Part shown: piece by piece, positions 1,666-19,678 of the stretch
Layout of the letters: the number at the start of each line of letters is the position of its first letter
Numbering within the stretch: the stretch's first letter is position 1
Program-made: the position numbers and the translations under genes
Assembly: GCA_946965045.2 (NCBI GenBank)
Contig: OX337242.1
Location: 1,302,001 to 1,366,000 of the forward strand
Direction: 5' to 3'
From: Epithemia pelagica
Taxonomy: Eukaryota > Protista > Bacillariophyta
DNA length: 64,000 nucleotides
Notes under the pieces: model-generated
The model's input: the letters and a program-made list of their open reading frames with translations, nothing else
What the model was told of the DNA's origin: nothing
Database searches by the model: none

Positions 1666-2676
1666 TCAAATTTGACTTTCAATCATATCCTGGTCCTCTT
1701 CTCGCAGAGATACAATGTAGGAGAGATCCGGAAATTCCTCCATGAGATATTCGTTTCCGCGCTTTTGAATCTTGGATTGATTCGGCTTTTCCTTGTACTG
1801 TGCATTGATTTTGTCCACGTACTCCATACCCTGAAGAACTTGAGCAAAAGGAGCAAAGCCCTCCTTGTCCAAATAAGCGTTATCACGCTTGTTGATGAAA
1901 AGTTGGGTATTGCGGGTGTTCTTTCCCGATGTTGCGTAGGTGATTGTTCCTCTTTGATTGCTTCGTTCTACAGGATCGTCCACCAGCTTGTCGTGTCTGA
2001 TTTTCTCCCGCCATTTCTGCTGAACTGAAGGGTTGGCAGCAATCCCAAATTGTACCACAAAATTTGGAACCACTCGAAAGAAACGACATTGATCATAGAA
2101 TCCTTCTTTTACCAACTGTTGGAAATGAGCAACACCCAAAGGTGCCCAGTCAGGACGGGTTTCGATTATCACTGTGCCGATATGGGTCTCTGTCAGTTCA
2201 TTTCCGACCAATCCTGCCAGTTCCATGACGTAACGCTTGGAAACAAGCATCTCGTCGCTGTTATTATCCTTAGTGGCAGCCTTGTCATTTACACTTTTCG
2301 GTCGGTCTTTTGGTTCGTTGTCAACTGCTTTGGGGTTTTCCCGAAGTCTTTGGTCAGATCTCTTCAAGTTTGCAACGGGTGTTGTCTTCTTATCTATTGA
2401 GGATGAAGTCCGTAATCCATTGGAATCCTTTTCGGCTTGACTACCACTATTTCGCAACAAGGTTCCAATAATTAAAAGCACCATACTAAGACAAATCAGG
2501 CACAAGGACAGTTCTCGGCGCCGATGAAACAAAAACTCAGACGTTGCCCTCGAGACCTCCTTGCGCCGCCTCCATCGGTCCGGACCTGATCCACCAGTTT
2601 GTCTGTATTGGATCAACTGCGGACCTCCAAGGTCATTCTCTTTGGTATTGGCCGAACTTCGTTTCATGGTCGCCAT
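1666..2676 (-). CDS. Membrane-anchored cyclophilin-type PPIase
   Basis: First in-frame ATG at 2676. Hydrophobic segment LSLCLICLSMVLLIIGTLL, then cyclophilin motifs APLGVAHF, FFRVVPNFVVQFG, RGTITYA, TQLFIN, GFAPFA. Confidence 0.9.
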   Translation of the reverse strand: MATMKRSSANTKENDLGGPQLIQYRQTGGSGPDRWRRRKEVSRATSEFLFHRRRELSLCLICLSMVLLIIGTLLRNSGSQAEKDSNGLRTSSSIDKKTTPVANLKRSDQRLRENPKAVDNEPKDRPKSVNDKAATKDNNSDEMLVSKRYVMELAGLVGNELTETHIGTVIIETRPDWAPLGVAHFQQLVKEGFYDQCRFFRVVPNFVVQFGIAANPSVQQKWREKIRHDKLVDDPVERSNQRGTITYATSGKNTRNTQLFINKRDNAYLDKEGFAPFAQVLQGMEYVDKINAQYKEKPNQSKIQKRGNEYLMEEFPDLSYIVSLREEDQDMIESQI

Positions 2677-2955
2677 AGAAAAAGATTTGAAAGAAGACCG
2701 AGAGAGGCTAAAAAAGTGCCTCACATGTTTTGGTCGTGGTGTTGTTGGTGACTGTATTTCAGTCGCGTTTCGTCTCGACTTACGAACGCGCACCTTTTTT
2801 GGCTACGTGCTCTAGGTACTATAGCTGGAGGATATAGAGAGTGGATTGATAACAATGAGACACACAATAGACGTTTTGCGCTTACGGATGACTATATAGG
2901 GAGCAAATTCGTTCGAGTCAGCCCTTTGATAGATAATGGAACGCGTCAAGCTTTC

Positions 2956-4092
2956 TTAAATACCGGGGGCCATGGAGCGGAGCTTCTCCAAAATGTCACT
3001 AGGAACGAGCCCTTCCAATAGAATCGGTTCTCCGGACGGCTCCTCCAGGCAAATTGGACTGTAGGAGATCCTTGTTCGAATGCCCTCGCGGAAGGTCAGA
3101 CAATCGTAGGCGCGGGCCGCAGTACCGTGCTGAGCCAATTTCTTTTTCTTGTACCAGACCACGTCACCCTCGACACAATAGTCGTTGGGGTTTCCAAATC
3201 GACCACAAGGGAAGGGCTCCTTTGTCATTGGGTTGACAAATACAGCCGAGAAGTGAGGCTCGTGGTCGCCCTTGCCTGGTTTCATCCATGTTATATAATC
3301 CTTGTTTCCAGCAGATATACGACGAGGAACATCGAACAACCATGCGTGCAAGGTTTGGCATGGAGCCTGGGTAAGACTTGTGGGACGAGACGGTGGAGTG
3401 ACAGCGGGGGCTGATGCACCATTGGCTGTGCCATGGCGTGGCGAGGACGAAGCGGCGTAGAATCTGCTTGAGTTCTCTGGCTCATTACCAGAATGAGGCG
3501 TCACCGTGGACACACTGTCCGCCGACGGAATCACGTGCACTTCCGTTGTCTGACTAGGATGATGGTTATCCCGCAATGTGGCCATTCCGTCACCTGACCT
3601 TTCTTCTACAATCAAGGTGAGACAACAACCAAGCCCTGATGGGACAACACTATTTTTAGCAATCTTCAACATACCTTGATACTGCTGGGTGTGAAAAGGA
3701 TTGTGGCTTGGCAGGTTTGTTTGCAAAAAGGGAGTTCCCTGGGCCAGCGAAGCCATCATGTCCGATGTACCTAATTGAACATGACGGTTGCTTGCGCGTA
3801 CACTCGAAGAGGAGAAAGAGATGTCCATTCCATCCATAGGACTCTGTGTTGGTGGAGCCTCTCCATGGCCATGCTTTTGAGGGAATGACTGTACATGCGA
3901 AGAAGCATCAGAGAACTGGTTGTGTGAAGCAGCGCTGGAGAGTGAAGCAGCGCTGGAGAAACCAAGTGTCGGTGCTGCAGAAGAAGCGTCATTTTGCGTG
4001 AAGTCGGCAGTCATCATGTTGGTTTCTTGACCATAAAAGTTTCCCGTGGGGACCTCAGGCATCATGTTTGGCGTTCGACCATCAGCTTGCAT
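2956..4092 (-). CDS. Protein with C-terminal divergent dsRBD-like domain (copy A, domain ~3085-3357)
   Basis: 378-aa ORF with low-complexity N-terminus. C-terminal LHAW...YITW...H...FSAVFVNP.T.E.FP.GRFG...WYKKKKLAQHGTAARAYDCL matches three other ORFs in the window. Confidence 0.7.
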   Translation of the reverse strand: MQADGRTPNMMPEVPTGNFYGQETNMMTADFTQNDASSAAPTLGFSSAASLSSAASHNQFSDASSHVQSFPQKHGHGEAPPTQSPMDGMDISFSSSSVRASNRHVQLGTSDMMASLAQGTPFLQTNLPSHNPFHTQQYQGMLKIAKNSVVPSGLGCCLTLIVEERSGDGMATLRDNHHPSQTTEVHVIPSADSVSTVTPHSGNEPENSSRFYAASSSPRHGTANGASAPAVTPPSRPTSLTQAPCQTLHAWLFDVPRRISAGNKDYITWMKPGKGDHEPHFSAVFVNPMTKEPFPCGRFGNPNDYCVEGDVVWYKKKKLAQHGTAARAYDCLTFREGIRTRISYSPICLEEPSGEPILLEGLVPSDILEKLRSMAPGI

Positions 4093-4333
4093 GGTTACTG
4101 GAAGTGGAGAAATGAAAACTATGAGACAAAACGCACATGTATTTCAAGTTTTGGTGAAAAACACGTACCTCCACTCTTACAATGCACAATTTCAGACTTT
4201 TGTGTGAAAGTGTGCGTCACTTGATTGATTGATATCTTTTCAATCTGCGTACTTCACACCAACTACCAAGAACGATCGACGCACCAGCCCATAGCGAATT
4301 TGTTCCGTCCTTGCTTTCAATGGCCCTTGTTTA

Positions 4334-6301
4334 TCAGCGACGAAACGAAGCTTGAACCTCTTTTATACGTTCAAGGACGTCTGGTGGTAGGTAATCAGGG
4401 AGATTGAGTCGATCCACGGACGGAGTCTCCAAACAAACAGCCTCGTATGGAACTCCCAGTCTCACGGACTGACGGTACTGTAGACAATCGTACGCTCGGG
4501 CGGCCGCCGCGGTTTCGGCACCTTTCTTGTTGAAAAACCAAATAATAGAAGTCAACTCTGGATCCGTTTGCTCCACAACAAACTGATCCTCACTTCCATA
4601 ACGAGCAGATGGGAAGCATTCTCCTGACGTTGGGTCCACAAAAATACTAGAAAATCTCTTGAGATGACAGGGACCGCCATTATCCCAAGTCACGTAATTG
4701 TGTGCGCCAATAGAGACTCGCATTTCCTGGCTAAACCATTTGTAGAGGCTATTCCGGACTTGTAGATTGGATACACGGGATGTTGGGGACGAGTGTGAAT
4801 TTACCGATGGAGATGGCGGTTGCGGTGAGGGTTCTGCGTGGCTGGCTTGTGCGAATGGTCCCGGTGTCGCTTCTTGACCAACATCACTGCGTCTACCTCC
4901 GGATAGAAGTGCATTAAAAATATCGTCTTTTGTCATCAAATTTTCCCCAAAAGAAGGTCCATACGTTTCGAGTAGAATTTGCCGGAGTTGTGGAATCGAC
5001 AGTTGACGCAAGGACTCTACGGAACGTTCCTCCCCTCGCGGAGAAGGATCCACAGCACTTCGACGACTCCCTTTCAAGTAGTTTACCAGTTCGGAATGTT
5101 GCATGCCATGGCAGTTGTGATTCGTCGGTAGCAACGACTGTATCTCATCCATACTCAGTCGATCCAATTCATGGTACAATCGAGCATGCATGCGTTCCAG
5201 ACGTCCACGCTCAAACTCCGGATCGTCCGTTTCCAGTTCCCAGCGACAGGTTGGGCATGAGCAGTGTTTCCTCAACCACGTATTAATGCAGTTTCGGTGA
5301 AAGCCATGTTTGCAAGGAAGATGAACAACGGCATCTGCTAGCTTGTACGTTTGACAGCAAATTTCACAGCTCTCGTTCGCATCGAGATGGTGTTGGCGGA
5401 TACGCGTTACTGGCAAGCTATTCACAACCCGTTCGGAAGCACGAGGAGATGCTCTTGGTTGCCCAGTTGCTTCCTCTAACGAAGCCTGCATGGCTGCTCT
5501 TAGTTGTTCTTCTTCCAGATTATGACTTGGAGGTACGTCCGCCAGGGAGTTATTCATTGCCTCTGTGAGATCGGCATCAAACATACCTTGTACTTCTTCC
5601 GCATTCATTGAATCTAGCAATGGATCTTGGTCGACTGGAGAGGTGGAGGAGGGTGGCTCTGCAAAAATGCGATTCACTCCCCAATCAACAGCGACCTCAA
5701 CCGACTCTTGACCTCCATGAGGGACACTTGTTGTCCAAGGATTCGTATCCTCCCTGTGTGCCGTCGCACCGTGCCTTTCAGAGGCATGTTGCGGGTGAAG
5801 AACATGCCCACTGCCCAAAAGCTGACTGTTGATTCCTGACGGAGCCGAACGAGAGGTCCTCTCGGTGGCGGCACCACTTTGGTCATGACGCAAAGAAACA
5901 TTTTGCGGCGAGTCAACGGGGCCTTGTGTGTATCCGAGGCTTTCCATCAGGTCGACACCACCGGATGTTGGATTTCCCGGTGACGTTGAATGTTCTTGAG
6001 AGAGAGCAGTCGCAGTACCTCGTTCGAGTGATTCTTGCTCTTCAACCCAAAATGAGTTTGGACGACGAGTCGGTCCTTCCTGAGAGTGTGTGGATACAGG
6101 TGGTGGGGATGCTTCGGTTGGGGAACTAGGCTCCTCGACGGATTCTGCGAATACCAAAGGAATGGAGTGATTTTCATCATGTTCGCTTGGAGATTTTGCA
6201 GCCGTCTCTGTACTAGGACCACCACCACCACCTAGCAAGGAAATCCATTGGTCATCGTCCGGAGGAGCTCCTTCGTCGCAATCTTCAAACGCCGCGTCCA
6301 T
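4334..6301 (-). CDS. UIM + RING-H2 + dsRBD-like protein (putative E3 ubiquitin ligase; copy B)
   Basis: First ATG at 6301. UIM-like EEEQLRAAMQASLEE (~5471-5515); RING-H2 CEIC..CKHGFHRNC..W..CPTC (~5243-5368); shared dsRBD-like domain at ~4469-4756. Confidence 0.8.
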   Translation of the reverse strand: MDAAFEDCDEGAPPDDDQWISLLGGGGGPSTETAAKSPSEHDENHSIPLVFAESVEEPSSPTEASPPPVSTHSQEGPTRRPNSFWVEEQESLERGTATALSQEHSTSPGNPTSGGVDLMESLGYTQGPVDSPQNVSLRHDQSGAATERTSRSAPSGINSQLLGSGHVLHPQHASERHGATAHREDTNPWTTSVPHGGQESVEVAVDWGVNRIFAEPPSSTSPVDQDPLLDSMNAEEVQGMFDADLTEAMNNSLADVPPSHNLEEEQLRAAMQASLEEATGQPRASPRASERVVNSLPVTRIRQHHLDANESCEICCQTYKLADAVVHLPCKHGFHRNCINTWLRKHCSCPTCRWELETDDPEFERGRLERMHARLYHELDRLSMDEIQSLLPTNHNCHGMQHSELVNYLKGSRRSAVDPSPRGEERSVESLRQLSIPQLRQILLETYGPSFGENLMTKDDIFNALLSGGRRSDVGQEATPGPFAQASHAEPSPQPPSPSVNSHSSPTSRVSNLQVRNSLYKWFSQEMRVSIGAHNYVTWDNGGPCHLKRFSSIFVDPTSGECFPSARYGSEDQFVVEQTDPELTSIIWFFNKKGAETAAAARAYDCLQYRQSVRLGVPYEAVCLETPSVDRLNLPDYLPPDVLERIKEVQASFRR

Positions 6302-6726
6302 GAGAAAGGTGTTTGTTGTATGCAATCCGCCGATGTTCGCGGGGGGCTTCTAGACTTTGCAGTGAAGGGAATGAACTGCGACTCCAATCTCCTAGACTCC
6401 GTGGGAGTTTTTGTTGCGAGTCTACAAAGTGCTGACGGTCCAACTCCAAACACATGGAACGCTTCTATCCCGTAAGACGATCATGAGGTGGGCGTACCAA
6501 CGATGCACATGGTTTTTCGTTTCCTGCCTATCGTCATGGTCCATGAAATAGACGGATCGAAAGACGTTGACAACCGATAATGTCATATCGATGTCTCATT
6601 GAAGTCGTCCCTGTGTCACAGCGCGTCTCTAAGATCGTGATGGATCTTTTCTTGTTGGATTGGATGGACGACATGCCAACAGAATTGGACCAACAAAACA
6701 ATCTTACGATTTGTCATAGAGTTATA

Positions 6727-8094
6727 ATGGTCAAAGTCCAAGCATCGTTTGAGAGTCTTTGTGTCCTTTTGTTGGTATCTGCATCATCGACGCTTTCATT
6801 GTCGCGTCCTGTTGAACATCGGATATCACGGCGTCAATGGTTGAGAGTGCTCCCCGCCTTGCCTTCCACACTGTTATGGCATCGTCAGGAAGATGACTCG
6901 AGAGCCAACGCTGCCATTGTGGATGAACCCACCGCTTTCAAACGGCCGTTGGGCCCCTCGCTGGCCCCCGAATATTTTCAATCACCAATCGACACTGCCC
7001 CAAGCGCCGGACGGTCGTACTTCCCGACCCTTACACCACCCTTTCAAAACAGAGCCACGTTCCGCTACACGGTGGGTCGCAATACGTGGGCCTTGGAACA
7101 GTTGCTCACCTTTGTCAATGTCACGGCGTCGATTCGCTGTCACGTCGTGAAATTGTAGTCCACGGGGGGACTGTGGGTGCACAGTCCTCAATGGCCGACG
7201 GGAGAATTGTGTCACTTGTTGAATGACTTGGGTGCACCCGTCCAACACATTGTCCTCCCCTGCAATGCCTTGGAACACAAGGCACCGATGAAAGCCTTTG
7301 TGCAACGGTACCCGGAGGCAAGCGTGTGGATATCACCCGGTCAGTATGGACCCTTTGGATCGTGTGGTCAAACACAAAAGGATCCAATGACTATGGGATA
7401 TCGAGTCGATGGTGTTCTGGGAAGTCCAGAAATGGCCTTAGAACCTCCACCATGGGCCGATGAATTTGACATGGCTACCTTGTACTTGGACTTACCCAAG
7501 AATGCCGGACCCGTTTCGGAAGTGGCGTTTTGTCATCGTCCAACCAAAACCTTGATTGCTACAGACGCGGTCGTGTACATTCCTAATACCGATACAGCTC
7601 GTTTAGACTTGTTTGAGACGTACTTTGCTCCCAAAGTAGTGCAAGACGATCCCACTTTTTGGCCACGAACAGTCTTACAGGCAGTCTTTTTGCCCCTTCG
7701 TACCGACCAGGATAATCCGATGCGATATCCTGGCTATGAGGCCATTCGAGAGAGGCTGATTCGAGCTCCCATTCTTCGAGCCTTTGTGGATGCTCGTGCA
7801 CCTATCCAAGTACAAGAATGGACCAACCAGATTGCCCAATGGGACTTTGATCGAATCCTGACCAGTCATTTTGCGTCACCCATTTGGGCCACACCCCGTG
7901 AGTTTGTCCAAGCCTTTGCCTACTTGTCGCCATCCTCCGAATCCGGCAGTGACGATGACAATCGTTTGACGCTTCCTCCCATTGCCTGCCAAGATTGGGA
8001 GTTGTTGCAGAATCTCAATGCTGTAATTTCCGACTACAATTTGGGAGAACCCGCCATTTTCGATTATCAGCGGGGCTGTGTAGAAACCAATTAA
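6727..8094 (+). pseudogene. DUF4336-family (metallo-beta-lactamase-like) gene interrupted by an in-frame TAG at 7156-7158
   Basis: ORFs 6580-7158 and 7177-8094 are in the same frame and read IRCHVVKL*STGGLWVHSP, a continuous DUF4336-like motif. Downstream: EHK, EVAFCHRPTKTLIATDAV, WDFDRILTSHF. ATG 6727 starts a signal-peptide-like sequence. No intron can remove the stop. Confidence 0.7.
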
Positions 8095-8647
8095 TTTCGA
8101 TGAAAACAAGAGTAACATTAAAAGGAAGACAATCGTGGAGATGCTTGGATCAATAAACGATTGGGAAACTTCCGCATGGGCATGAGGTTGTATTTACATT
8201 GCAGGAGGTTCGTTTTCTTTTCTGCTATGGTCTGCGCCGTCATCCGCTATTGATGGATGGAACGCCTTTTGTGAAGAGAAAGCGCTTTCTTTGAAGTACT
8301 TCTTGTAACGCGATGAGGAGGGCGTGATTTAAGGCATGACCAATTTACAAGAAGAGGCTGTTTCGATTCATCCATGAGTAAGGTTTGAGACCGTTTTTGT
8401 GATGCATCGATCGATGCTCATTCTTGGATGTAAATAAGGTCTTGATGGTAGTTAGACACGCAAAAGTTACAAATAGCAACATCGATATATCTTGTACAGA
8501 TTCTACATCTATTGTTGAAAGGTATCTTTGCCTTTGGCTGTGCTCTGTATATTGTCATGAATGGAGGAAAATTGCACATTGTCGTCATGTTTGTTTCCCT
8601 CCAACCAAGGTGGTGGTTGTAGGCCCTCTACTCTATCTGCTGCTCTT

Positions 8648-9178
8648 TCAATCCCACCATTCGTTGATGGCGCAATTGCATGTTATGTACTGCTTCGTGA
8701 TTGGATCTCTTCGGACAAGGCACATTCCATGATGCCATTTACGAAACCAAATCACTTTTCCTTGTTCTTCATCAAAGTATCCGACGACACCACCATTCCA
8801 TTCTTCTTCCCATTCCACTTGTTTCGTCAAGGGGTTGTAAACACCGGCAACGCCATGATGCCAAGATTCGTGCCATTCCACTTTTTGTGTGTGAGGGTTG
8901 TACACACCGGCTACACCGCCATTCCACAGTTCCTTCCATTCCACTTGTTTGATATGAGGATTATACACTCCGGCCACTCCATGATTCCAAACCTCCTTCC
9001 ATTCAATTGTGTTGGTACTTGGGTTGTATACACCGGCTATGCCTCCATGCCAACGCTTCCGCCATTCCACTTCTTTCGTGTTGGGATCGAATACTCCACA
9101 GATGGATCCATTCCAATAGGTTTCAATGACCCCATCTGGTACATTGTACGTTTCTTCAAGGGATTGTGCGCAGCCCAT
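8648..9178 (-). CDS. Small Trp-rich 21-aa tandem-repeat protein with N-terminal MGC lipidation motif
   Basis: 176-aa ORF starting MGCAQS, with about 6.5 repeats of consensus W(N/H)xGVAGVYNPxTxxVEWxEx. Confidence 0.75.
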   Translation of the reverse strand: MGCAQSLEETYNVPDGVIETYWNGSICGVFDPNTKEVEWRKRWHGGIAGVYNPSTNTIEWKEVWNHGVAGVYNPHIKQVEWKELWNGGVAGVYNPHTQKVEWHESWHHGVAGVYNPLTKQVEWEEEWNGGVVGYFDEEQGKVIWFRKWHHGMCLVRRDPITKQYITCNCAINEWWD

Positions 9179-9701
9179 ATTTTTCTTCGATATCTAGCGG
9201 TTGTTGTTTCTTCGATTTTTTGGTTTTATGAGAAAAGACATTGGTTTTGTGAGTAGCGCGTACTCCCGCCTATCCGGTTTTGCCAAAAACAAACGACCCA
9301 CCACAACCCGCTGTTCCGAGTGCCGACGAGTATTCGCGCTTCCCCCAGTAGTTGTCGCCCTTCTTCAGTTTTGGGGGGTGCTATCTTCTTCACTTGGGTC
9401 CGGTGGGGGGGGAGAAATTTTAGCGCTATTGCAGCCATGGCTCAATGGCTATGGGGTCTTGAGTGCATCACATAGTAGATCTAAGTTTCCTCCGCCTTTG
9501 TCATTGTTGGCTTCTGACATCAGTTCATGAATAAACCTTTGTGTTTTGTGTTTACATTTACGATGGGCAGAATCCATGATTTCTTGACAATCGACTGCAA
9601 AGTATGAAGGTACGCGAAAGTCAAAAAAACAAAGGGCAACAGACTTTAAAGAGATGGCGCGAAAGATCTTCAAACCTAGGTTAGGACTCAGTCACAAACT
9701 G

Positions 9702-11078
9702 TCAATCACTTTTATCTGGCCTTGCTTGGTTTCGAGCTCGTCCAATCAGCTCCAGGGCCGATGGAGGAATCAGGCTTGTTGCAAGGACTAAAGGCTGAGC
9801 AGCCGGTTCGTCCAAACCCATTTGTTCGTACTCTTGGTTTTTTTCCAGTCCATACCGGTATGTCAAACAGTCGTAAGCCCATGCGGCCGCACCATTTTCC
9901 GCCGCACGTTTGGTCGCAAACCAAATCAAACCAGTGGCTTGTTCACATGTGGCGGTGAAATCCCCTGCCCTGCGTCCATCGACCCAATATTCGTTTCCGT
10001 AGCGCCCCGACGGAAAGCATTCCCCCGTCCTAGGATCCACAAAAACACAGGAAAACCGCTTTTCGTGGTCTCGTTTTCCATCGTCAAACGTTATGTAGTC
10101 CGATCCCTTGGGATAAGAGCGATAGCGCTTGGAACACCACGAGTAAAGTGCTCCTTTGGGAGCATGTGCTTGTTTGGGCGGAACGGGGATTTTCTCTGGG
10201 TGTGGATTTTCTTTCTTAATGGGAGCAGCGGTAGCAGACGGGGGAAGAATGCTCTTCTTCGTGTTGTCATGGCTTTGATACACTTTGGGTTTCTTCTCTG
10301 TTCTGTTTTTAGTGGAGGAATGAAACTGGGGATCCCCCTCCGAGGCGGTCTTAGCTGAGAATCCGGGTGGTACTGGGATAGAGGTTTTGATGTCCTTGGG
10401 CTTGGACGGATCATCGGCGAGTGACAGTTGCTTTTCTGGAATGGGAGACGCGTCCGTGTCGCCGGGGCTTTGACGAGCAGTATTCTTCGTTTCTGTCATG
10501 AACTTCTTGGTGGAACGAAACTGGGAATCCTTCTCTGAAGCGTCTTTGGCAGAGAATTCAGGTGCGACTGGGGAAGTGGTTGTCATGTCCTTGCGTTTGG
10601 ACGGAACCGTTAGTTTCTCGGTGAGTAGCTGTCGCGTTTCTGGTATGGGAGTAGCGCAGGGTGCTGGTGGGGATGGAATATTCTGGTCCATAACGCTCTG
10701 GCTCCCCTTGTTCTTCGTCTCTGTCATGTATTCCTTGAAGGAATGATGTTTGGAATCCCCCGACGCGACCATGGTGGAGAATCCGGGTGGGGCTGGGAGC
10801 GTGGTAGTAATCACGCGGTTGGACGCCGCTACCGACGGTTGAGACGGTAATGTATTGTCCCCTCTGGACATGTCCCCTTTATGGACTTGAAGTTGATGCC
10901 GACGTTCGTGTTGAGACAGCGATTCCGAAACAACCTTGTCTGAGTCATCGACTTCCTCGTTTACCATCTTCAGTGCTGTTTCAGTGGATGGATTCGACAC
11001 TTTCGGTGATGCTCCCTCGTTTTCCAAATTACTGCCTTCTGCAGAAGCTACAGGTGTGGGACATTCGGAACTTGTCAT
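9702..11078 (-). CDS. Protein with internal repeats and C-terminal dsRBD-like domain (copy C, domain ~9852-10160)
   Basis: 458-aa ORF with three P(P/E)xFS...TETKN-type repeats. C-terminal PKGALYSW...YITF...HEKRFSCVFVDP.TGECFPSGRYG...WFATKRAAENGAAAWAYDCL. Confidence 0.72.
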   Translation of the reverse strand: MTSSECPTPVASAEGSNLENEGASPKVSNPSTETALKMVNEEVDDSDKVVSESLSQHERRHQLQVHKGDMSRGDNTLPSQPSVAASNRVITTTLPAPPGFSTMVASGDSKHHSFKEYMTETKNKGSQSVMDQNIPSPPAPCATPIPETRQLLTEKLTVPSKRKDMTTTSPVAPEFSAKDASEKDSQFRSTKKFMTETKNTARQSPGDTDASPIPEKQLSLADDPSKPKDIKTSIPVPPGFSAKTASEGDPQFHSSTKNRTEKKPKVYQSHDNTKKSILPPSATAAPIKKENPHPEKIPVPPKQAHAPKGALYSWCSKRYRSYPKGSDYITFDDGKRDHEKRFSCVFVDPRTGECFPSGRYGNEYWVDGRRAGDFTATCEQATGLIWFATKRAAENGAAAWAYDCLTYRYGLEKNQEYEQMGLDEPAAQPLVLATSLIPPSALELIGRARNQARPDKSD

Positions 11079-11614
11079 GAATACGCCTCCAGCTCCTTCG
11101 GTCTGAATGATGAGCGATGATATTCGACAGATTGACCTACAAACGTGGTCGGTTCGGACTTTTGAGTAAAGCGTGTCAACTCATCAAGAAGTTTTTCAGT
11201 GAAGGTCGCACCGTGAGAGAGTTGCTCCCAAAACCAGTACCACAAGTCCCTTGTGGTTTCTCGAGTTTCTTTATTGACTAGAAGGTCGGCATCACGCAAG
11301 AAGGATGACAAGCGTCGTAGTACCAACGTTCAAAATAGCATTAAGGAAATCGTTGGCAATACCTGCGAATAAGCGCACCGTCACTAGCAGTCTTTAGATC
11401 TCGTCCTACCTCGCAAAGCTGCCTAGACGAAAGAACGGTAGAATGAGGAACAAGTGAATTTCCGTGTCATTCACGCGTCGACAGACAGTCCAAGTTGTGT
11501 AGCATTACTGAATAATTTTGACAGCGCTGTGTAGCATAGCTGTCAGCAGTCAATCGAAAAGGACTTTTGTCCTCCATAAGTCTTTGTCGGAAGACCAGTG
11601 ACAATAATTTTCAT

Positions 11615-14600
11615 CTATTTCGCTTCGTACCAAGTCTGGCAATCATGAGAGCCATCGACGAGTAGCGGCACAGATGTTGGATTGAGACCGTAAGTCCACG
11701 GGTTTTCCATGCACTGAACAACTTCTTTGAATGCTTCTTCAGCGGTTTCTTCCGGACCTTCCAAAATGACTTCGTCGTGAATCTGAAGCAATAGAATCCA
11801 TCCCAGATCCTTGAGTTTCTGAGAGTTGTTGATTTTATTCATGGCCATCATCACCACATCGGCCGCACCGCCTTGGATCGGCGTATTGATGGATGCCCGT
11901 TCCACACCTCCAATGGTACGCCAATCAGTGTTTCTTGCCTTTGGCAAGTGCCGGTATCGTCCCATGAGAGTCCTTGTGTAACCAAATTTTCGGGCTGTTG
12001 CTTTGGTAGCCTTTTGCCATTTTTCGACCTCCCACCGAGCGGCGTACCACTTCTTGACGATGTTTTCTGCTTCCTGTTGCGACACACCCCAGTCTTTGCT
12101 GAGTCCATGTGCCGTCTTGCCATACGCAATGGAGAAATTCAAAGTTTTGGCTTTTCTTCGTTCCGAAGCGAACTCGTCCTTCAGTAGTGGTTTCGGTGCT
12201 TTGCCTTTGGTAGAATCCCATTCCAACAAAACTTCACCACTATCCACCTTTTTGCGAATGTAATCAAACATATCCAACGCAGTTCGGGAATGAAAGTCAC
12301 CACCAGACAAAAAGGCATCTATCATCGATTTGCACTCTGTCAGGCTGGCCAAAATCCGAAGCTCTAGCTGTCCGTAGTCAGCCACAATCAGGTTATTTCC
12401 GGGAGACGAACAAAAGGCTTTTCGGATTTTGTACTTGTCTTTTTCCAATGCCGGTTGATTTTGTAGGTTAGGACGTCGTGAGGATAAACGGCCAGTCTCC
12501 GTATTTAGATTCAGACCGCAATGAACACGGCTATCCTTATCAGCTGAATCTTGCAAGCTGGTCAAGAAATTGGAAATCATTGTATCGATAGAACCAATCG
12601 AGCACAAACTGAAGAGTGCTTTGCAGCCTTCCTCTCCAACCAAATCATAAGCCTAAAAGAGACGAGAATACCAAAAAGTGAGATTCAGGCTTGTCCACAT
12701 CAATTTGCCAAGCATTTCACGAGGACAATCGACGTACCTCTCCTCGTTTGGGGGGATCGGCAAAGGGATCCCCTGCAAGTTTTCGGAGCACGTCCGCAGT
12801 GACACTGGGAGATCCCCCTACAGTTTGTTTGGTAGGCTCGAGGGCTTTTACTTGCCCGTTTGGGGATTTTTCTTTCATGAGCTCTTGCAAGCTAATGACT
12901 TCCAATTCAAAGTGTTTGGGGGGAGGTTTTGGTTCCGCTGGTCGTGACTCTAAATAATCTGCCACCATTGTCCCGGACTTGCGGGCTATGTCGGCCATGG
13001 CTCCTGCAACCTCAGCGGGTGAATCATATTCTCCCATCAATCCTTTATAGAGCTTCATTTGTTGCTTGTACTCTTTTTCCATTTCTTCGCGCGGACAACC
13101 ATCCACCACCCTTATACTATAGGCCGTCAAGGCGTCTTTCAGGTCTTTGTCTGACATTTCTTTTATGGCTTTGGGTTCATTCTCTTGCTCTTGTGTTTGC
13201 GTTTTCAGTGACTTTATAAAGTGTTCTAACAACCGGGCTTGCAACTCCGACTTTTTGCCGCTGACTTTCAGGCGGTGATGTTTGCAATCTTGTTTCAATT
13301 CGGCCACCTTACTATTCTGAAGTTTTTCGTTCAATTTGGCAATGGTTTTGTCAAAGTCACTGAGTTCGTCTGAATGAATATAATAATGAGGAAATACAAA
13401 ACAAAGCAGTATCGTGAGGCAAACCAGTGGGACTCTAGGCAAGGTGAACCCATTTTCAAAGCGAGACGCACCATTCTGTTGCGCCGAAATGCCTTCTTGC
13501 TCTTGACGTTCTCGTTCCAGTTGCTCTTCATGGGCATCCAAGGCTTCTTGTGGAATTTCCGTTCGCGGAACGGTAAAGATGCGTCGTGTCTCCAAGGTGG
13601 TTTGTCCCGTTTTTCCAGTTTTGCATCCTCCAAACAAAAAGGTTTGCAACTGCGCCGACGAGGCTGGATTCAAGGCGAGACCATGCGCTCGTTTTTCGGG
13701 CGGATACAGGCTCGCCACCCAATTGCGAAAGGTGGATTCGTGATAGTGTCGATCCTGTCGGGCCGTTTGTTCGACCGAGGCCAAGTAATCCTTGGCATCG
13801 ACGCGGATTCCGCGACGTTCCATGTCCGTCAAGACTTGTCCAAAGGGACGCATATGCATCCAATAATAATCCCACATGGTCTTGTCTTCAATCCATTCGT
13901 ACGACAGCTTGTCTTCAAAAGCGTCCGACAGTTGTCGGCCCGACAGCAAGTCTTTGAGGACTCGTCGCAATTCCCACGTCATGCGAGCATCCTTGGCGGA
14001 ATATTCAATCCATTTGGTTCGATGCGCGGGATCGCGTTGCAGCACTTCAACGGGTGGTACCAACTTGACTTTGCCATCGGTCCCATCTTTGCGTTTTTTG
14101 GGTACTCCAAAAATTTCCTTCATGTTGGTTTTGCGATCATCGGCGGTTTCTCCACTGGTCTTTCCATCCGCAGTGGATGTTTGGTTGTCCATCGGTTGGT
14201 CACTCGACGACGTTTGTTCCTCGGGGTTGGCCAACAAGAGTGTCGTCAGTCGTTCCAAGGAATATTGGATGCGACTGGTATTTTGCAATCGCGCCATGTG
14301 CATGGTATCTCCTCCAAAGCCTTGAACGTCAATGCCTTCGTTCCACAAGACGTGTCGATCAAAGCCAACATTGTGCCAGACTTTGAGAAAGCGATCATCT
14401 TCCAACCAGTCCTTAAATTCCATCAAAATACCACAGGCATCGTCCAAATTGTCAATCCACAAGGTTGTGCCCGGTCCATCGCCCAAACCATAATCAAAAT
14501 CCGGTCCGGCATACATGGAAAGACAGGTGACGTAGCCATTGCCGACGGGACCTTGTTGCTTGATATCAATTTCCATGACTTCGGTATCACAGGCATGAGA

Positions 14601-15725
14601 CATGGATTGACTGTGCGCACTAAAGAGTTGTTGCAAGACGATTTGCGCTTGTTCCTGGGTGCGTACAATCGTGACATTGGGAGGCGCAGGCACGGCAGTG
14701 ACATCGAAATAGCCATCGTCGCCCGGTCCCAATCGAATCAAGGGATCCAATTTTTCTTTGGTATCTTGCGATCGACGACCAAAGTCCTTGGCCCATTTCA
14801 AGGGATTTTGAACATTCCAATTGCCATTGGGTTTGGGACGACTGGTAACCCCCCTGCTATGCAAATACTCTTCCACCTCGGTTTCATCCATTTCGGGTTG
14901 GTCGGATGAAAAGGAGGAGGATGCGACATGGTCAATCGAGTGGTGGGGTGGTTCGTCCTCTACGACTACGGCCGGAGGGAAGATGGGGGGTACGGTTTCC
15001 TCGGGCCGTAAGGATGCCGCCGACGACGATGACGACGAGGGAGGAAGTTCATCCTCTGCCTCTAGTTCGTGAATCGATTCCATGAAATCCTCCCCATACT
15101 CCTCCTCTGGATCCACAACTACAGTGGAGGAGGAGGGTTGAGGGAGGGTCGAACTCCAGGCCACGCGGTCACTGGTATGATTCTTCCAGGTTGTCGGTGA
15201 TGGTGGACCGAGGACGGAAGACGAAGAAGAAGAACTTTGGAATGGCAATGGTTGTGCTCCTAGCAACGTCCGTTTTCGGATTCGTCTTGGATTTCTGTTC
15301 CCGAACTGTCGTTTGGAACCGTCCCAGGAACATGTTCCCAGGCATTGCATCCCCAGGACAGTGTTCTGCTGGCGACCATACCGAGTGGTGCACCGTAGTA
15401 GTGGAACCACCATGGTTGTGGTTGTTGTTGGTTGTGTGGTCCTCCTCCGGAAACGTTGCTGGACAAATGCTGGTGTTGGAGCTGCAGCAAGGACCGGAAC
15501 GGACGACAAACTTGCCACCAAAACTCCAAGAAGCAACAGGACGAGACGGCTGTCGAACCAACCACAAGAAGCAAAAGCAAAAGATTGTCTTGGTGAACGA
15601 TGACAATCTCTGCGTCGTGGATGACAACGACGACGACAAAACGTGGAGGAACTTGACGACGACGACGACGGGTTTTGTTGTAAAGGAAGAAGAAAGGATC
15701 GTGGACGACGCCGTTGTCTCGTCAT
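11615..15725 (-). CDS. POP: Organellar family-A DNA polymerase (POP / Pol I-like) with 3-5 exonuclease; exons 13472-15725, 12738-13369, 11615-12652
   Basis: Exonuclease motifs HACDTEV, WHNVGFDRH and YSAKDA; polymerase motifs ETGRLSSRRPNLQN, ADYGQLELR, RRKAKTLNFSIAYG, INTPIQGGAAD and QIHDE. GT-AG introns at 13370-13471 (102 bp, in frame) and 12653-12737 (85 bp). N-terminal hydrophobic signal followed by AFV resembles a diatom plastid-targeting leader. Confidence 0.93.
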
Positions 15726-16353
15726 GCTCGGATTTTTGGGTGGTGCGTCTTTGGGGGCGGTGGAGGAGGTGCGGGGAGGAGAGTTGTTGTGTGGTGTCTG
15801 TCAGCTGCCTTTCGTGTTGAGCAATGACTACTTAGCTTTAATTAATTGTAATTCATTCAATCAATTATCTACAATTTGAGCTTAGCCACGCTGGAGTGTC
15901 TGAAAAAATGGAAAATTCCCTTCTGTCCTCCCTCTTCAGATCCAGAGGTTTATAACCACCCCCATCATATGGTCTACCTAGACCATGGCGATGGCGCACT
16001 ATGCAACAACAAGGTTGGGAGAAACTCAGCCCACCATTCGACTTTTATCCATAGGGACGGACAAGTGCTCTTTTACTCTACATCAGTAATAGTAGAGAAA
16101 CTAGGTAGAATCCATGGGCAAAACACATTTGTTTGGGAAACAATAATTGTTCCATGCTATTATCTTGTAGTGCACTGTCTTTTGTTGCTTTGAGACTCTA
16201 CTTCTTCTAATTGACCAAAGATTCCGAATCGAAAGCGTACAAACACATTCCTGTGCTTCGTGTCCACCGAGTGCCGTGCCAGCAGGCACGATCCGTTCCA
16301 TGGAAACACATATACAAACACACACACACACGCACACACACGCAAACACACTC

Positions 16354-17175
16354 TCATCGTCTGGTCGGTGGGACTTGTTCCAGGACCACTTCATCGTCAT
16401 CCTGGTCGTGGTCCGAGTAGTGGTCCACTTCCTGTTCGTCCACCATTACACCATTGGCCAACAAGGCCTGTTTCAATTCCTCTTCGGACATGTCGTCCAT
16501 GGCTCGCACCTGCTCCAAGAGGCCTTGTTGCAAGTCGGCATTCATGTCCGTGTTGTTGGCCAGTGCTTGTGCCAACGCCTCCATGCGGTCGTCATTGTCA
16601 TTGTCGTCGTGTGGCAGTCCTTCCCCTTCCAAGTCCTCGTCGCCAATCTCCAGGGAAATTCCACATGGTTCTTTTGGTTCTGGTTCGTGCCGTGTGGGTG
16701 GTGGTGCTTGAGATGACGACGACTGAAGGTGTGCCGCATACGCATCGCGCAATCGATGTTGCAAGACCGACTTTTTGCCCTGGGAATTCAACCCCCATTG
16801 GTGACATGTGTGTTTCAGATCGGCCACCGAACTGCTCATCCAGTGTTCGTCCCAGGCCGCCAATTGTCGTTCGTACTGGTGGTCCCTGTTGTTGTTGTTG
16901 TTGTTGTTGTTATCATCGTGGAGGGTGGCTTTGCTGCTGCTGCTCTTACGACGATGATGACGTTTGGTACTACTGCTACTGAACCAGGATACCAACGACA
17001 ACGACGACAGGCCACTCCTGGAGGAGGGCGCAGCAGTGAGTCGTTTGCTGGGATCGTCCACCATCCACCCAACGAGGGGAGCGGAACACGAGGAACGACC
17101 TTGTGGTTGTCGAAGACTCTGACAAACCGTTGTCTGGAGTGGCATCCAGCCGGAACGCAACCGACAAAGAACCAT
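16354..17175 (-). CDS. SAP-domain protein with Arg/Ser-rich transit-peptide-like N-terminus and acidic tail
   Basis: 273-aa ATG ORF. SVADLKHTCHQWGLNSQGKKSVLQHRL fits the SAP consensus; a second helix-like DMSEEELKQALLANGV is near the C-terminus. Confidence 0.6.
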   Translation of the reverse strand: MVLCRLRSGWMPLQTTVCQSLRQPQGRSSCSAPLVGWMVDDPSKRLTAAPSSRSGLSSLSLVSWFSSSSTKRHHRRKSSSSKATLHDDNNNNNNNNRDHQYERQLAAWDEHWMSSSVADLKHTCHQWGLNSQGKKSVLQHRLRDAYAAHLQSSSSQAPPPTRHEPEPKEPCGISLEIGDEDLEGEGLPHDDNDNDDRMEALAQALANNTDMNADLQQGLLEQVRAMDDMSEEELKQALLANGVMVDEQEVDHYSDHDQDDDEVVLEQVPPTRR

Positions 17176-17989
17176 GGTCGACCAACAGCTAGGTAATAAG
17201 ATGAGAGAAACAAAGATTGACTCAAAGATACCCTATTGTCCGTCCGTCCGTCCGTCCGTCGTAAAGGCTAGCACTGCTAGCCCTCCAATCGACGGGTCGA
17301 CTCCCATCAGTATCATGTACTACTCCCCAACGGTTTAGTTAGTCGAGTCTGATCCCATAAAAATAGTGGAGTTCGATCATAGTGAAGAATGCGAGTCTAT
17401 CACGATCGGAGTTACAGAGACTCTCTCGGACCACCAACGATTCCCTCATCCTTCGATGATTATTTTTTTTTTGTCGAGCGTCGAGAGGCCTCATACGATT
17501 AGATTGAACGAGTGTTGTTTGTGGTTGCGAACGAACTATTCCCCAACAGCAAGCAAGCGCACGGTGTGTGTGCTTGTGAAACGCACAACAACCCCGCACC
17601 AACTGTTGTGAAGAGACGGGATCCACGACGAGACGCGTGCCACAAGAAGCAGTATTTTATCACGTTCTACCATTGGTGGGTGGGTATCCGAATAATAATA
17701 AGAGAGTGGTGGGACTTTGCATCATCATTGAGATTTCCAGGTGAACTTGGAGGGGAATGTGACTTTGCGATTTGGTGCGAAACCCAAAGTAAGCACAACC
17801 ACCAACAACCATTACCACAAACGCAACAACCGTGAATGTTCGCACACGTTTCCTTTCTTTTCCTGTTCCAATCACGATTGCCACTCCACAATCTGGATCC
17901 ATTGGTCTGGTAGTTAGTGGTGGTTGGTGAGAACGACACAACATCCATCCAACGATCCCAAACGACGCAATAACAACCACAACAACGGT

Positions 17990-19678
17990 ATGTCGTACAA
18001 TCGCGGATTTTTGAATCGACCATCTCGGACTGGGAATTCTCAACCACAACAAGGGGTCTTGGGCGATCCTCGATCCGATCGTCGCAGTTGGTCCGAGTAT
18101 TATGGTGGGAACGTTGGTATTAGTGCTAGTTCTTCGTTTCGAGGCGGCGATCGTGATCGTGTGGGAGGAGGAGGAGCTACGGGTCGATCGGTCCCGCTGT
18201 CGTCCAATTGGGGTGCCCTGTCATCCTCCTCACCACCACCCAATAACAACAACAGCAGTACCACAACGACAACCCCCATGGAGACTAGTACCACTTCGTT
18301 TACGACGACGACCAATGTGGTGAAACGGGTCATTGTGGTGGACGCAGCAGCCGGAGCACCACCCACTCCTTCTTCTTTTTCCTCCTCCTCGTCGATTCCC
18401 ACACACACCACTCCAATCAGCAGCAAAGTACCATCATCATCCTCTCCTCCCGATTCGCGATTGCCACCTCGCAAACGACAATACATGCCCATGGAACATG
18501 ATGACGATGTTGTCATGAAGATGAAGGACCAACCATCACCAGTCGTGGTCAAGGCCGAGCCCATGGAAGAAGACGAAGACGACCACAAGACTGTCACGAC
18601 CGCAGCAAGTACACAACCCTCCTTGGCATCGTCGAGTAGTCGAACCACGTCTACCACGACATCCTCTTCCACCTCCTCTGGCGGCCTGTCCCATCCCCTT
18701 GAACCACTCGTGACCCACAAGATTCCTCCCCCGATCAAACAAGGCATGGTTCCCAAGGCGGCCTTGTATACCTGGTGTGGCAAGAGTCGCTTGGTCTTGG
18801 GGGAGGCCAATTACATTACCTGGGACAATGGAGGCCGACCGCATGAAAAACGATATACCAGTGTCTTTTGCCATCCCACGACCGGTGAATGCTTTCCCTC
18901 GCGACGCTATGGACACGACAAGTATTATACCCTTCAAGAACAAGCGGCCGCCGCACCGGACCAAACGACTGCTGCTTCGTCGACCATGATTCAAACCGTT
19001 TGGTATACCAAAAAGGCCTTTGCCGAACATGGTGCGGCGGCCCATGCCTATGATTCCTTGACGCATCGAGTTACATTGGAACAGCAACAACAATTGGCAC
19101 AACGACATGGCCAACAAGGCCGGCCCGTCCTGCAAGTGTATGAACGCATTAGTGATGATCCTCCTCAAGTCCATCCACCGCAACCCACCTGGCATGCGCA
19201 CTTGCCACCCCCGTCCCAAATTCCCGCCGAAGCCTGGCAAAAATTGCAAACGGCCCATGAACAAGCGGCCGCAACACCCGCTCCAGCACCAACCACGACA
19301 GCCACACGAACCATGCCGGCACCCGCGTCCACCACTCCCACGAGTCGCATGACGATGCCACCCCCACCTCCACCCATTCCCCTCCCACCACCGCATTGGT
19401 CTCAACCCGTGCAACGAGGAGGAAGCTCGCAACGATATTTTGCGGCCCCTCCCGAACATCCCAGTCAACAATATCATCATGCGTCCTATTATCATCCTCG
19501 ATCGTCACCACCGAATCACCACCACCAGGATGCGGCACGTGCTCCGCCGCCGCAACAGCAAAAGCCCCGTCGAGGGCCGTCCCAGCAGCCACCACACCCT
19601 GGACGATCGTCGTGGAATACTCCACCCTATCATCCACGGGGTGGTGGTGGTCCGGGGGGTCGTGCTCCGTATTCCTAA
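17990..19678 (+). CDS. Low-complexity protein with central dsRBD-like domain (copy D, domain ~18752-19072)
   Basis: First ATG at 17990. PKAALYTW...YITWDNGGRPHEKRYTSVFCHPTTGECFPSRRYG...WYTKKAFAEHGAAAHAYDSL, flanked by S/T-rich and P/Q/H/RGG-rich disordered tracts. Confidence 0.72.
   Translation: MSYNRGFLNRPSRTGNSQPQQGVLGDPRSDRRSWSEYYGGNVGISASSSFRGGDRDRVGGGGATGRSVPLSSNWGALSSSSPPPNNNNSSTTTTTPMETSTTSFTTTTNVVKRVIVVDAAAGAPPTPSSFSSSSSIPTHTTPISSKVPSSSSPPDSRLPPRKRQYMPMEHDDDVVMKMKDQPSPVVVKAEPMEEDEDDHKTVTTAASTQPSLASSSSRTTSTTTSSSTSSGGLSHPLEPLVTHKIPPPIKQGMVPKAALYTWCGKSRLVLGEANYITWDNGGRPHEKRYTSVFCHPTTGECFPSRRYGHDKYYTLQEQAAAAPDQTTAASSTMIQTVWYTKKAFAEHGAAAHAYDSLTHRVTLEQQQQLAQRHGQQGRPVLQVYERISDDPPQVHPPQPTWHAHLPPPSQIPAEAWQKLQTAHEQAAATPAPAPTTTATRTMPAPASTTPTSRMTMPPPPPPIPLPPPHWSQPVQRGGSSQRYFAAPPEHPSQQYHHASYYHPRSSPPNHHHQDAARAPPPQQQKPRRGPSQQPPHPGRSSWNTPPYHPRGGGGPGGRAPYS

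Follow-up and report, generated by a model that had tools for sequence, protein, structure and literature searches.

Four genes in a 64,000-nucleotide stretch of the genome of the diatom Epithemia pelagica (the window; C18:1302001-1366000, on contig OX337242.1 of a 60.5 Mb genome in 23 contigs) encode proteins that have a single C-terminal domain in common. We refer to these genes and their products as W1 to W4. [quoted passage not shown] It is a new branch of a well-known module, rather than a system of a new type. Our overall reading, to which we assign a probability of roughly 0.6, is that this extended dsRBD defines a large diatom family, that it likely serves as an RNA tether for variable partners, and that W1 to W4 are old tandem duplicates.

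The shared domain and its predicted fold

The shared domain spans about 135 residues. In an all-against-all BLASTP comparison of W1 to W4 it was the only region in common (E 3e-15 to 3e-30, 65-112 bits), with every pairing outside it at E above 1, and a MAFFT alignment of the four copies contained 23 invariant columns at a mean column identity of 56%. Exactly these four copies were found when the window was scanned in six frames with a profile of the wider family. An earlier annotation of this DNA from its letters alone (hereafter the sequence-only reading) had described four proteins that share one domain and are otherwise unlike, with the domain at ~3085-3357, ~4469-4756, ~9852-10160, and ~18752-19072. 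The BLASTP comparison and the alignment bear this out. All four ranges fall inside the domain as delimited here, and the motifs listed for it, L(Y/H)xW, Y(I/V)T(W/F), H, F(S/T)xVF, PxTxExFPxxR(Y/F)G, W(Y/F)xxK(K/R)xA, and AAxAYDxL, are real in the alignment.

An AlphaFold2 model of the W1 domain (2959-3399, minus strand), built from a 48-row alignment, had a mean predicted local distance difference test score (pLDDT) of 91.7 and a predicted template modeling score (pTM) of 0.86. Its helices (H) and strands (E) run H13-22 E35-39 E50-55 E62-64 E74-77 E80-83 H86-109 H134-143, with an ordered loop before the last helix. A second AlphaFold2 model, covering W2 from its RING finger to the end, gave the same order of elements (H231-246 E255-259 E269-274 E281-283 E293-296 E305-308 H311-334 H359-373), and the 10-residue block means of pLDDT were 88-98 in its domain. 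When the W1 model was compared with 48,161 PDB representative chains using VIA-align, dsRBDs filled 50 of the 50 best rows. The best match was HYL1 dsRBD1 (Z 8.3, root mean square deviation (rmsd) 1.8 A, 72/72 residues), followed by DRB7.2 (Z 8.2) and DCL4 dsRBD2 (Z 8.0); TARBP2, the DHX29 dsRBD-like domain, bacterial RNase III, MLE, Staufen, R2D2, Loquacious, DUS2, HEN1, ADAR, and PKR were further matches. Re-alignment of the 1000 best chains from Foldseek left 100 chains with Z>=5, the best 50 of which were all dsRBDs or dsRBD-like domains. Foldseek itself, run against PDB and BFVD, returned no match at E<=0.001, and its best rows held many dsRBD/DRBM proteins mixed with unrelated ones. The named neighbors in a search of ESM features were all dsRBD-type by name or Pfam family (LIX1, dsrm, DSRM_DHX29, DND1_DSRM) at scores <0.9, and we treat them as only a lead for dsRBD kinship. 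The models predict a dsRBD fold with an alpha-beta-beta-beta-alpha core whose helices both pack against the same side of the sheet. This agrees with the dsRBD-like label given by the sequence-only reading, for which AlphaFold and Foldseek had been proposed as the check.

The same label is supported by the Pfam dsRBD family (PF00035, dsrm), which reaches the domain through its relatives. At E<=1, Pfam dsrm matched 13 of 48 family members, with a best E of 3.5e-5. In the relative P0087, dsrm positions 1-63 of 66 aligned with residues 112-194 and scored 22.6 bits, slightly short of the 23-bit gathering cut-off, and this alignment takes in the entire domain with about 20 extra residues. Other relatives stayed under the cut-off at 22.1, 19.5, and 18.1 bits, and in other members dsrm covered either the alpha1-beta2 half or alpha2. 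By the same cut-off, W1 to W4 are not PF00035 members in the strict sense. A sequence search of PDB with a profile of the four copies found nothing at E<=10. We found no description of the family in the literature on diatoms and dsRBD/DSRM, in a coverage without most subscription journals, and none was evident among the titles of the literature on diatom Dicer and small RNAs.

Additions to the canonical core

The statistics given for the family refer to 201 domain copies unless stated otherwise. Their consensus consists, in order, of PKaaL(Y/H)xWYGK; Y(I/V)TW(D/N)xGGxpHexkFTSvFvCPlTGExFxSGrYG; a variable stretch; GvVWYkkKKlAEHAAAARAlDCLxyRe; and D.PY...LP..P with a helix. The diatom domain has the same alpha1-beta1-beta2-beta3-alpha2 core as canonical dsRBDs of the PF00035 type, such as HYL1 dsRBD1, DRB4, TRBP, and the RNase III C-terminal domain (Z 7-8.3, rmsd 1.6-2.0 A, ~72 residues). 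It also resembles them in the histidine of the beta1-beta2 loop, in an alpha2 that opens with KKxAE and then AAxxA, and in the frequency of tandem arrays of 2-4 copies. Unlike canonical dsRBDs, it has an insert of ~20-25 residues ahead of alpha2 that comprises a conserved loop and one extra strand, a conserved W-Y just ahead of alpha2, a D-C..R signature on alpha2, and a C-terminal extension of ~35 residues with D.PY...LP..P and a third helix.

The loop after beta2, CPxTGExFxSGRYG, is 18 residues long. The sequence-only reading had correctly picked out PxTGExF..G..YG..W as a non-canonical insert, and the segment proves to be family-defining, with conservation of 91-96% at four residues (P 93%, E 92%, F 96%, G 91%). 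Other family-specific residues are the D (95%), C (91%), and R (91%) of the D-C..R signature. The C-terminal extension with the third helix was modeled at a block-mean pLDDT of ~95, and both of its prolines are kept in at least 90% of rows. Canonical beta3 would correspond to one of the last two strands ahead of alpha2. The variable stretch, which precedes the last strand, measures 7-64 residues across the family and 9, 15, 21, and 26 residues in W1, W2, W3, and W4, respectively. Alignment gaps and an alanine-rich insertion of W4 lie between the final pair of strands in the W1 model, and the variable stretch would fit a hairpin with a length-tolerant tip.

Extended dsRBDs are known from other proteins. 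The tRNA-dihydrouridine(20) synthase DUS2 has one that is attached to a flavin enzyme, with its extension on the N-terminal side. The DUS2 domain (PDB 4wft, 5oc6) has two stretches in common with the diatom domain, PKxxLxxW in alpha1 and LW.KSKKLAEQAAA, which runs up to and into alpha2. It aligned to the W1 model at Z 6.8-7.0 with 22% identity, the highest among the structural matches, at a sequence match that is not significant; neither the conserved loop nor the C-terminal helix of the diatom domain was seen in the aligned stretch. Yeast Rnt1p has a dsRBD with a third helix. In Schizosaccharomyces pombe Dcr1, the C-terminal domain likewise consists of a dsRBD core and an added C-terminal segment packed on the core (PMC3199388). 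Neither S. pombe Dcr1 nor Rnt1p was among the 50 best VIA-align matches. A zinc site of the S. pombe Dcr1 type was considered and rejected: a cysteine follows beta2 in 66% of the family, but W1 to W4 have N, D, D, and H at this position. W4 also lacks the cysteine of the D-C pair.

The diatom family and the array in the window

In proposing a lineage-specific module, the sequence-only reading drew the domain's range too narrowly, as it belongs to a large family with members in both centric and pennate diatoms. A word-index search with W3 retrieved just three proteins: P0001 (98% identity), P0002 of Epithemia clementina (53%), and P0003, which has two copies of the domain. A full HMMER search returned 532 cluster representatives at E<=0.001, of which 374 reached E<=1e-10, and rescoring with a profile made from W1 to W4 alone found the domain in 150 of 150 listed proteins. 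One copy is present in 114 of 168 proteins, two in 35, three in 11, and four in 8. The informative organism names are all diatoms: Epithemia clementina, Cyclotella cf. meneghiniana, Thalassiosira exigua, T. pseudonana, and Thalassiosira sp. NH16 (MMETSP). The T. pseudonana member (XP_002294282 / B8CDL9) is named after its SAM domain only. A single Alexandrium transcriptome entry, which clusters at 90% identity with proteins from T. pseudonana, is probably diatom contamination. Some members are MMETSP transcriptome sequences and are therefore expressed. The fusion partners recognized by Pfam across the family are RING, DnaJ, SAM, and PPR.

Counts for the E. pelagica genome, obtained by six-frame scans with the family profile and with Pfam dsrm, are lower bounds. 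The family profile found at least 6 genes, four of them in this 17-kb cluster. The family is not confined to this locus. A 1816-aa protein at C13:2535087-2540537 (L008:4088-9538, plus strand) has the domain near its N-terminus (aa 185-284) and a C-terminal DnaJ; it is a likely orthologue of P0074, which is of the same length class and has the same C-terminal DnaJ. At C2:708579-713675 (L020:1080-6176, minus strand), a 1698-aa protein combines a PPR_3 match with at least two domain copies, an architecture that it shares with P0034, a Cyclotella protein of 1556 aa in which a PPR match is likewise joined to tandem copies. Centric-diatom proteins of 1500-1700 aa with the same PPR make-up carry up to four domain copies, and this architecture of PPR and tandem domains appears conserved across diatoms. 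The scan with Pfam dsrm found at least one canonical match (29.5 bits), in a 1288-aa open reading frame (ORF) at C18:1415825-1419691 (L007:2326-6192, minus strand), ~52 kb beyond the window. This protein was not matched by the family profile, and the two families are therefore separable.

The four window proteins differ in what precedes or follows the domain. W1 (2956-4092, minus strand; 378 aa) has an N-terminal part without a Pfam match (E<=1) and then the extended domain (2959-3375), with the dsRBD core at aa 240-340 and the extension with the third helix reaching aa 378; its E. clementina orthologue, P0030, is 44% identical over 202 aa. W3 (9702-11078, minus strand; 458 aa) begins with three internal repeats of ~45 aa that can be seen in its translation. 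Its domain (~9744-10181) extends from aa 300 to ~445, as given by a hidden Markov model envelope of 300-427 plus the extension taken from the alignments, and the orthologue is P0002, which adjoins the same DNA polymerase gene in E. clementina. W4 lies on the plus strand (17924-19678; 584 aa, first ATG 17990) and consists of a low-complexity N-terminus, the domain (18731 to ~19258), and a proline-rich tail. At 26 residues, the variable hairpin tip of its domain is longer than in the other three, and the nearest relative of W4 is P0024 (50% over 189 aa). Neither W1 nor W4 had a Pfam match outside the domain.

W2 (4334-6325, minus strand; 663 aa) carries a RING-H2 finger, a helical linker, and then the domain. 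Its first ATG, at 6301, would give 655 aa, and the near-identical P0013 begins there (aligning from aa 9). The RING-H2 finger (5243-5371, aa 319-361) matches Pfam zf-RING_2 at E 3.1e-11 and 43.8 bits (cut-off 27.3), and the domain with its C-terminal extension occupies 4337-4777, as placed by the four-copy alignment and the second AlphaFold2 model. The E. clementina orthologue, P0019, has two RINGs and the domain. Between RING and domain (aa 392-474; 4904-5152, minus strand), the AlphaFold2 model shows two helix-loop-helix units, with 10-residue block-mean pLDDT mostly 80-90, that look SAP-like by eye; Pfam makes no call there. Roquin, MEX3, and Makorin are RNA-binding RING ubiquitin ligases that use ROQ, KH, or CCCH modules. 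W2 resembles them in combining a RING-H2 finger and a predicted nucleic-acid-binding module in one protein, although its module is the dsRBD-like domain instead. We know of no description of a ligase that combines RING and dsRBD.

The genes of the array stand between housekeeping genes. Along the minus strand the order is a DNA polymerase, W3, a small repeat protein, W2, W1, and a cyclophilin, with a DUF4336 gene on the opposite strand between the repeat protein and W2; the polymerase and a SAP-domain gene separate W4 from the rest. The family-A DNA polymerase (11615-15725, minus strand; 3'-5' exonuclease and SAP domains; Pfam DNA_pol_A, DNA_pol_A_exo1, and SAP) and the cyclophilin (1666-2793, minus strand; Pfam Pro_isomerase, E 1.4e-24) are outside the domain family and serve as synteny anchors. 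On E. clementina contig JBGMNV010000045.1 the same order is found: polymerase, P0002 (W3), ~43 kb, P0019 (W2), P0030 (W1), and cyclophilin, with identities of 43-49% for the orthologues of W1 to W3. P0024, the nearest relative of W4, is on a contig of another assembly and is alone within 10 kb on each side. In a tree of the 201 domain copies, the window copies and their nearest relatives formed a 15-tip group with weak support; an approximately unbiased (AU) test did not reject this group (p 0.77), and the constrained tree had the higher likelihood. We conclude that the array is a tandem duplication within one diatom sub-lineage that is older than the split from E. clementina, because the gene order is common to both, and that it has been retained between housekeeping genes. 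We considered a recent local expansion and rejected it, as every one of the paralogues is matched elsewhere by an orthologue or nearest relative of its own, at 44-50% identity by BLASTP. Thus the proposal that the module had been expanded and shuffled locally stands in part: the 15-tip group and the AU test point to one locally duplicated subfamily, but it forms an old syntenic array and not a recent shuffle.

We note some further features of the neighborhood. The polymerase gene is present as two ORFs that are 73 bases apart, and its E. clementina orthologue is called as a single gene of 1119 aa; the gap is probably a short intron. The small repeat protein between W3 and W2 (8648-9178, minus strand) is a 176-aa ORF without a Pfam match that contains about six tandem 22-residue repeats of the type G-V-A-G-V-Y-N-P-x-T-x-x-V-E-W-x-E-x-W-x-G. 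A (TG)n/(CA)n microsatellite at ~16280-16330, with the SAP-domain gene on one side and the W4 upstream region on the other, produces V-C and T-H runs in translations.

RNA binding and competing explanations

RNA-binding (type A) dsRBDs are recognized by contact residues in alpha1 (region 1), the GPxH histidine in the beta1-beta2 loop (region 2), and KKxAK/E at the N-terminus of alpha2 (region 3). The sequence-only reading had seen a resemblance of the window copies to GPxH and KKxAE, and it is genuine, as the loop histidine and the first lysine are invariant in W1 to W4. The second position of KKxAE is K, K, R, and A. Across the family, the histidine is kept in 131 of the 201 copies (65%) and an exact GPxH in 36. 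W2 has an exact one (GPCH), and some members carry an aromatic residue after the exact GPxH, with three residues in between. The first position of KKxAE is K/R in 165 copies (82%) and the second in 96 (48%); histidine and first lysine occur together in 62%. An RNA context is also suggested by the conserved PPR protein, a member of an RNA-binding repeat class, that carries tandem copies of the domain in this genome and in Cyclotella. From these residues, RNA binding by the domain seems plausible, at odds somewhat better than even. The domain would most likely bind double-stranded or structured RNA through the retained histidine loop and the lysine-rich start of alpha2. It would thereby tether variable partners to RNA, namely disordered regions in W1, W3, and W4, a putative RING-H2 ubiquitin ligase in W2, and DnaJ, SAM, or PPR elsewhere in the family.

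Several observations weigh against an extended dsRBD that tethers its partners to RNA. The alpha1 helix of canonical dsRBDs contributes a glutamate that contacts RNA; here alpha1 (PKaaL(Y/H)x(W)YGK) has no conserved glutamate, and different alignments put W/L/Y or A/S/Q at the candidate position. Conservation peaks at residues (CPxTGExFxSG, DC, R) that are specific to the family and lie outside the canonical RNA-contact positions, and such conservation could point to a partner other than generic double-stranded RNA (dsRNA). Many of the matched dsRBDs (Staufen dsRBD5, DRB7.2:DRB4, TRBP dsRBD3) serve protein contacts. In sequence comparisons, W1 to W4 had no Pfam dsrm match even at E<=1, a PDB search with a 48-row profile gave the DUS2 dsRBD as its sole match at E ~0.7, and hhalign against a single canonical dsRBD from the same genome aligned alpha2 alone at a probability of 5%. 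Finally, Z ~8 falls in the range that VIA-align calls common, and our fold argument rests on the uniform list of matches and the full coverage of small targets, not on the height of Z.

Some of these points would be expected if the dsRBD fold had become a protein-protein interaction or dimerization module ('type B') and lost RNA binding, with the family loop and the C-terminal extension forming a docking surface for a common partner. Conservation is strongest at family-specific positions and not at RNA-contact ones (histidine and second lysine being the weaker of these), and the best structural matches include dsRBDs solved in protein complexes (DRB7.2:DRB4, DCL4 dsRBD2 with the DRB4 C-terminal domain, Miranda/Staufen dsRBD5, TARBP2-Dicer). 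Tandem dsRBD proteins often combine RNA-binding with protein-binding copies. In the diatom tandem proteins, later copies often lack the histidine, which is present in 74% of first copies vs 38% of second copies. However, histidine and first lysine are both retained in all four window copies and in most of the family, some members have the exact GPxH with its downstream aromatic, and the PPR fusion fits an RNA context. We therefore view loss of RNA binding as a real but minority possibility, with perhaps one chance in four. Recognition of a particular nucleic acid other than generic dsRNA, such as tRNA-like folds as in DUS2, DNA, or RNA:DNA hybrids, with the extensions giving specificity, is unlikely. 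The nearest PDB sequence is indeed the human DUS2 dsRBD, which shares PKxxLxxW (alpha1) and W..KKLAE..AA (where alpha2 begins) and has the top identity among the structural matches, and W2 has the two SAP-like units between RING and domain, but the DUS2 match is not significant and we found no feature specific to DNA binding.

The sequence-only reading had gone further and suggested a locally expanded small-RNA, antiviral, or anti-transposon toolkit beside a region rich in transposable elements. Apart from the dsRBD fold, we found nothing to recommend it. The candidate Dicer of T. pseudonana is reported to have two RNase III domains only and no dsRBD (PMC4156623), which makes separate dsRNA-binding partners conceivable. 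However, the immediate neighbors of the cluster are housekeeping genes (cyclophilin, DUF4336, family-A DNA polymerase, SAP protein) in an order conserved in E. clementina, a scan of IMG/VR with patterns from the four window copies found no relative, and the cluster contains no Argonaute, Dicer, or RNA-dependent RNA polymerase. We consider such a toolkit improbable, and slightly more so than the specific-ligand reading above. A related and similarly doubtful idea is that the family supplies the separate dsRNA-binding partners of a reduced diatom Dicer machinery, in which RING members such as W2 would couple dsRNA recognition to ubiquitination in a diatom-specific silencing or antiviral branch.

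We thus retain the extended dsRBD as a likely RNA tether for variable partners, and its value lies in annotation, as the mechanism brings no surprise. Diatoms, which are major primary producers, have poorly defined machinery for RNA silencing and RNA processing. The genome of E. pelagica holds at least one canonical dsRBD match vs at least 6 genes with the unrecognized variant, and hundreds of public representatives have no Pfam name for the domain. A dsRBD-like label is a testable annotation for many 'hypothetical' diatom proteins, including a conserved PPR protein as well as DnaJ and SAM proteins and putative RING ligases, and the family provides a defined candidate set for RNA-binding studies in Phaeodactylum or Thalassiosira.

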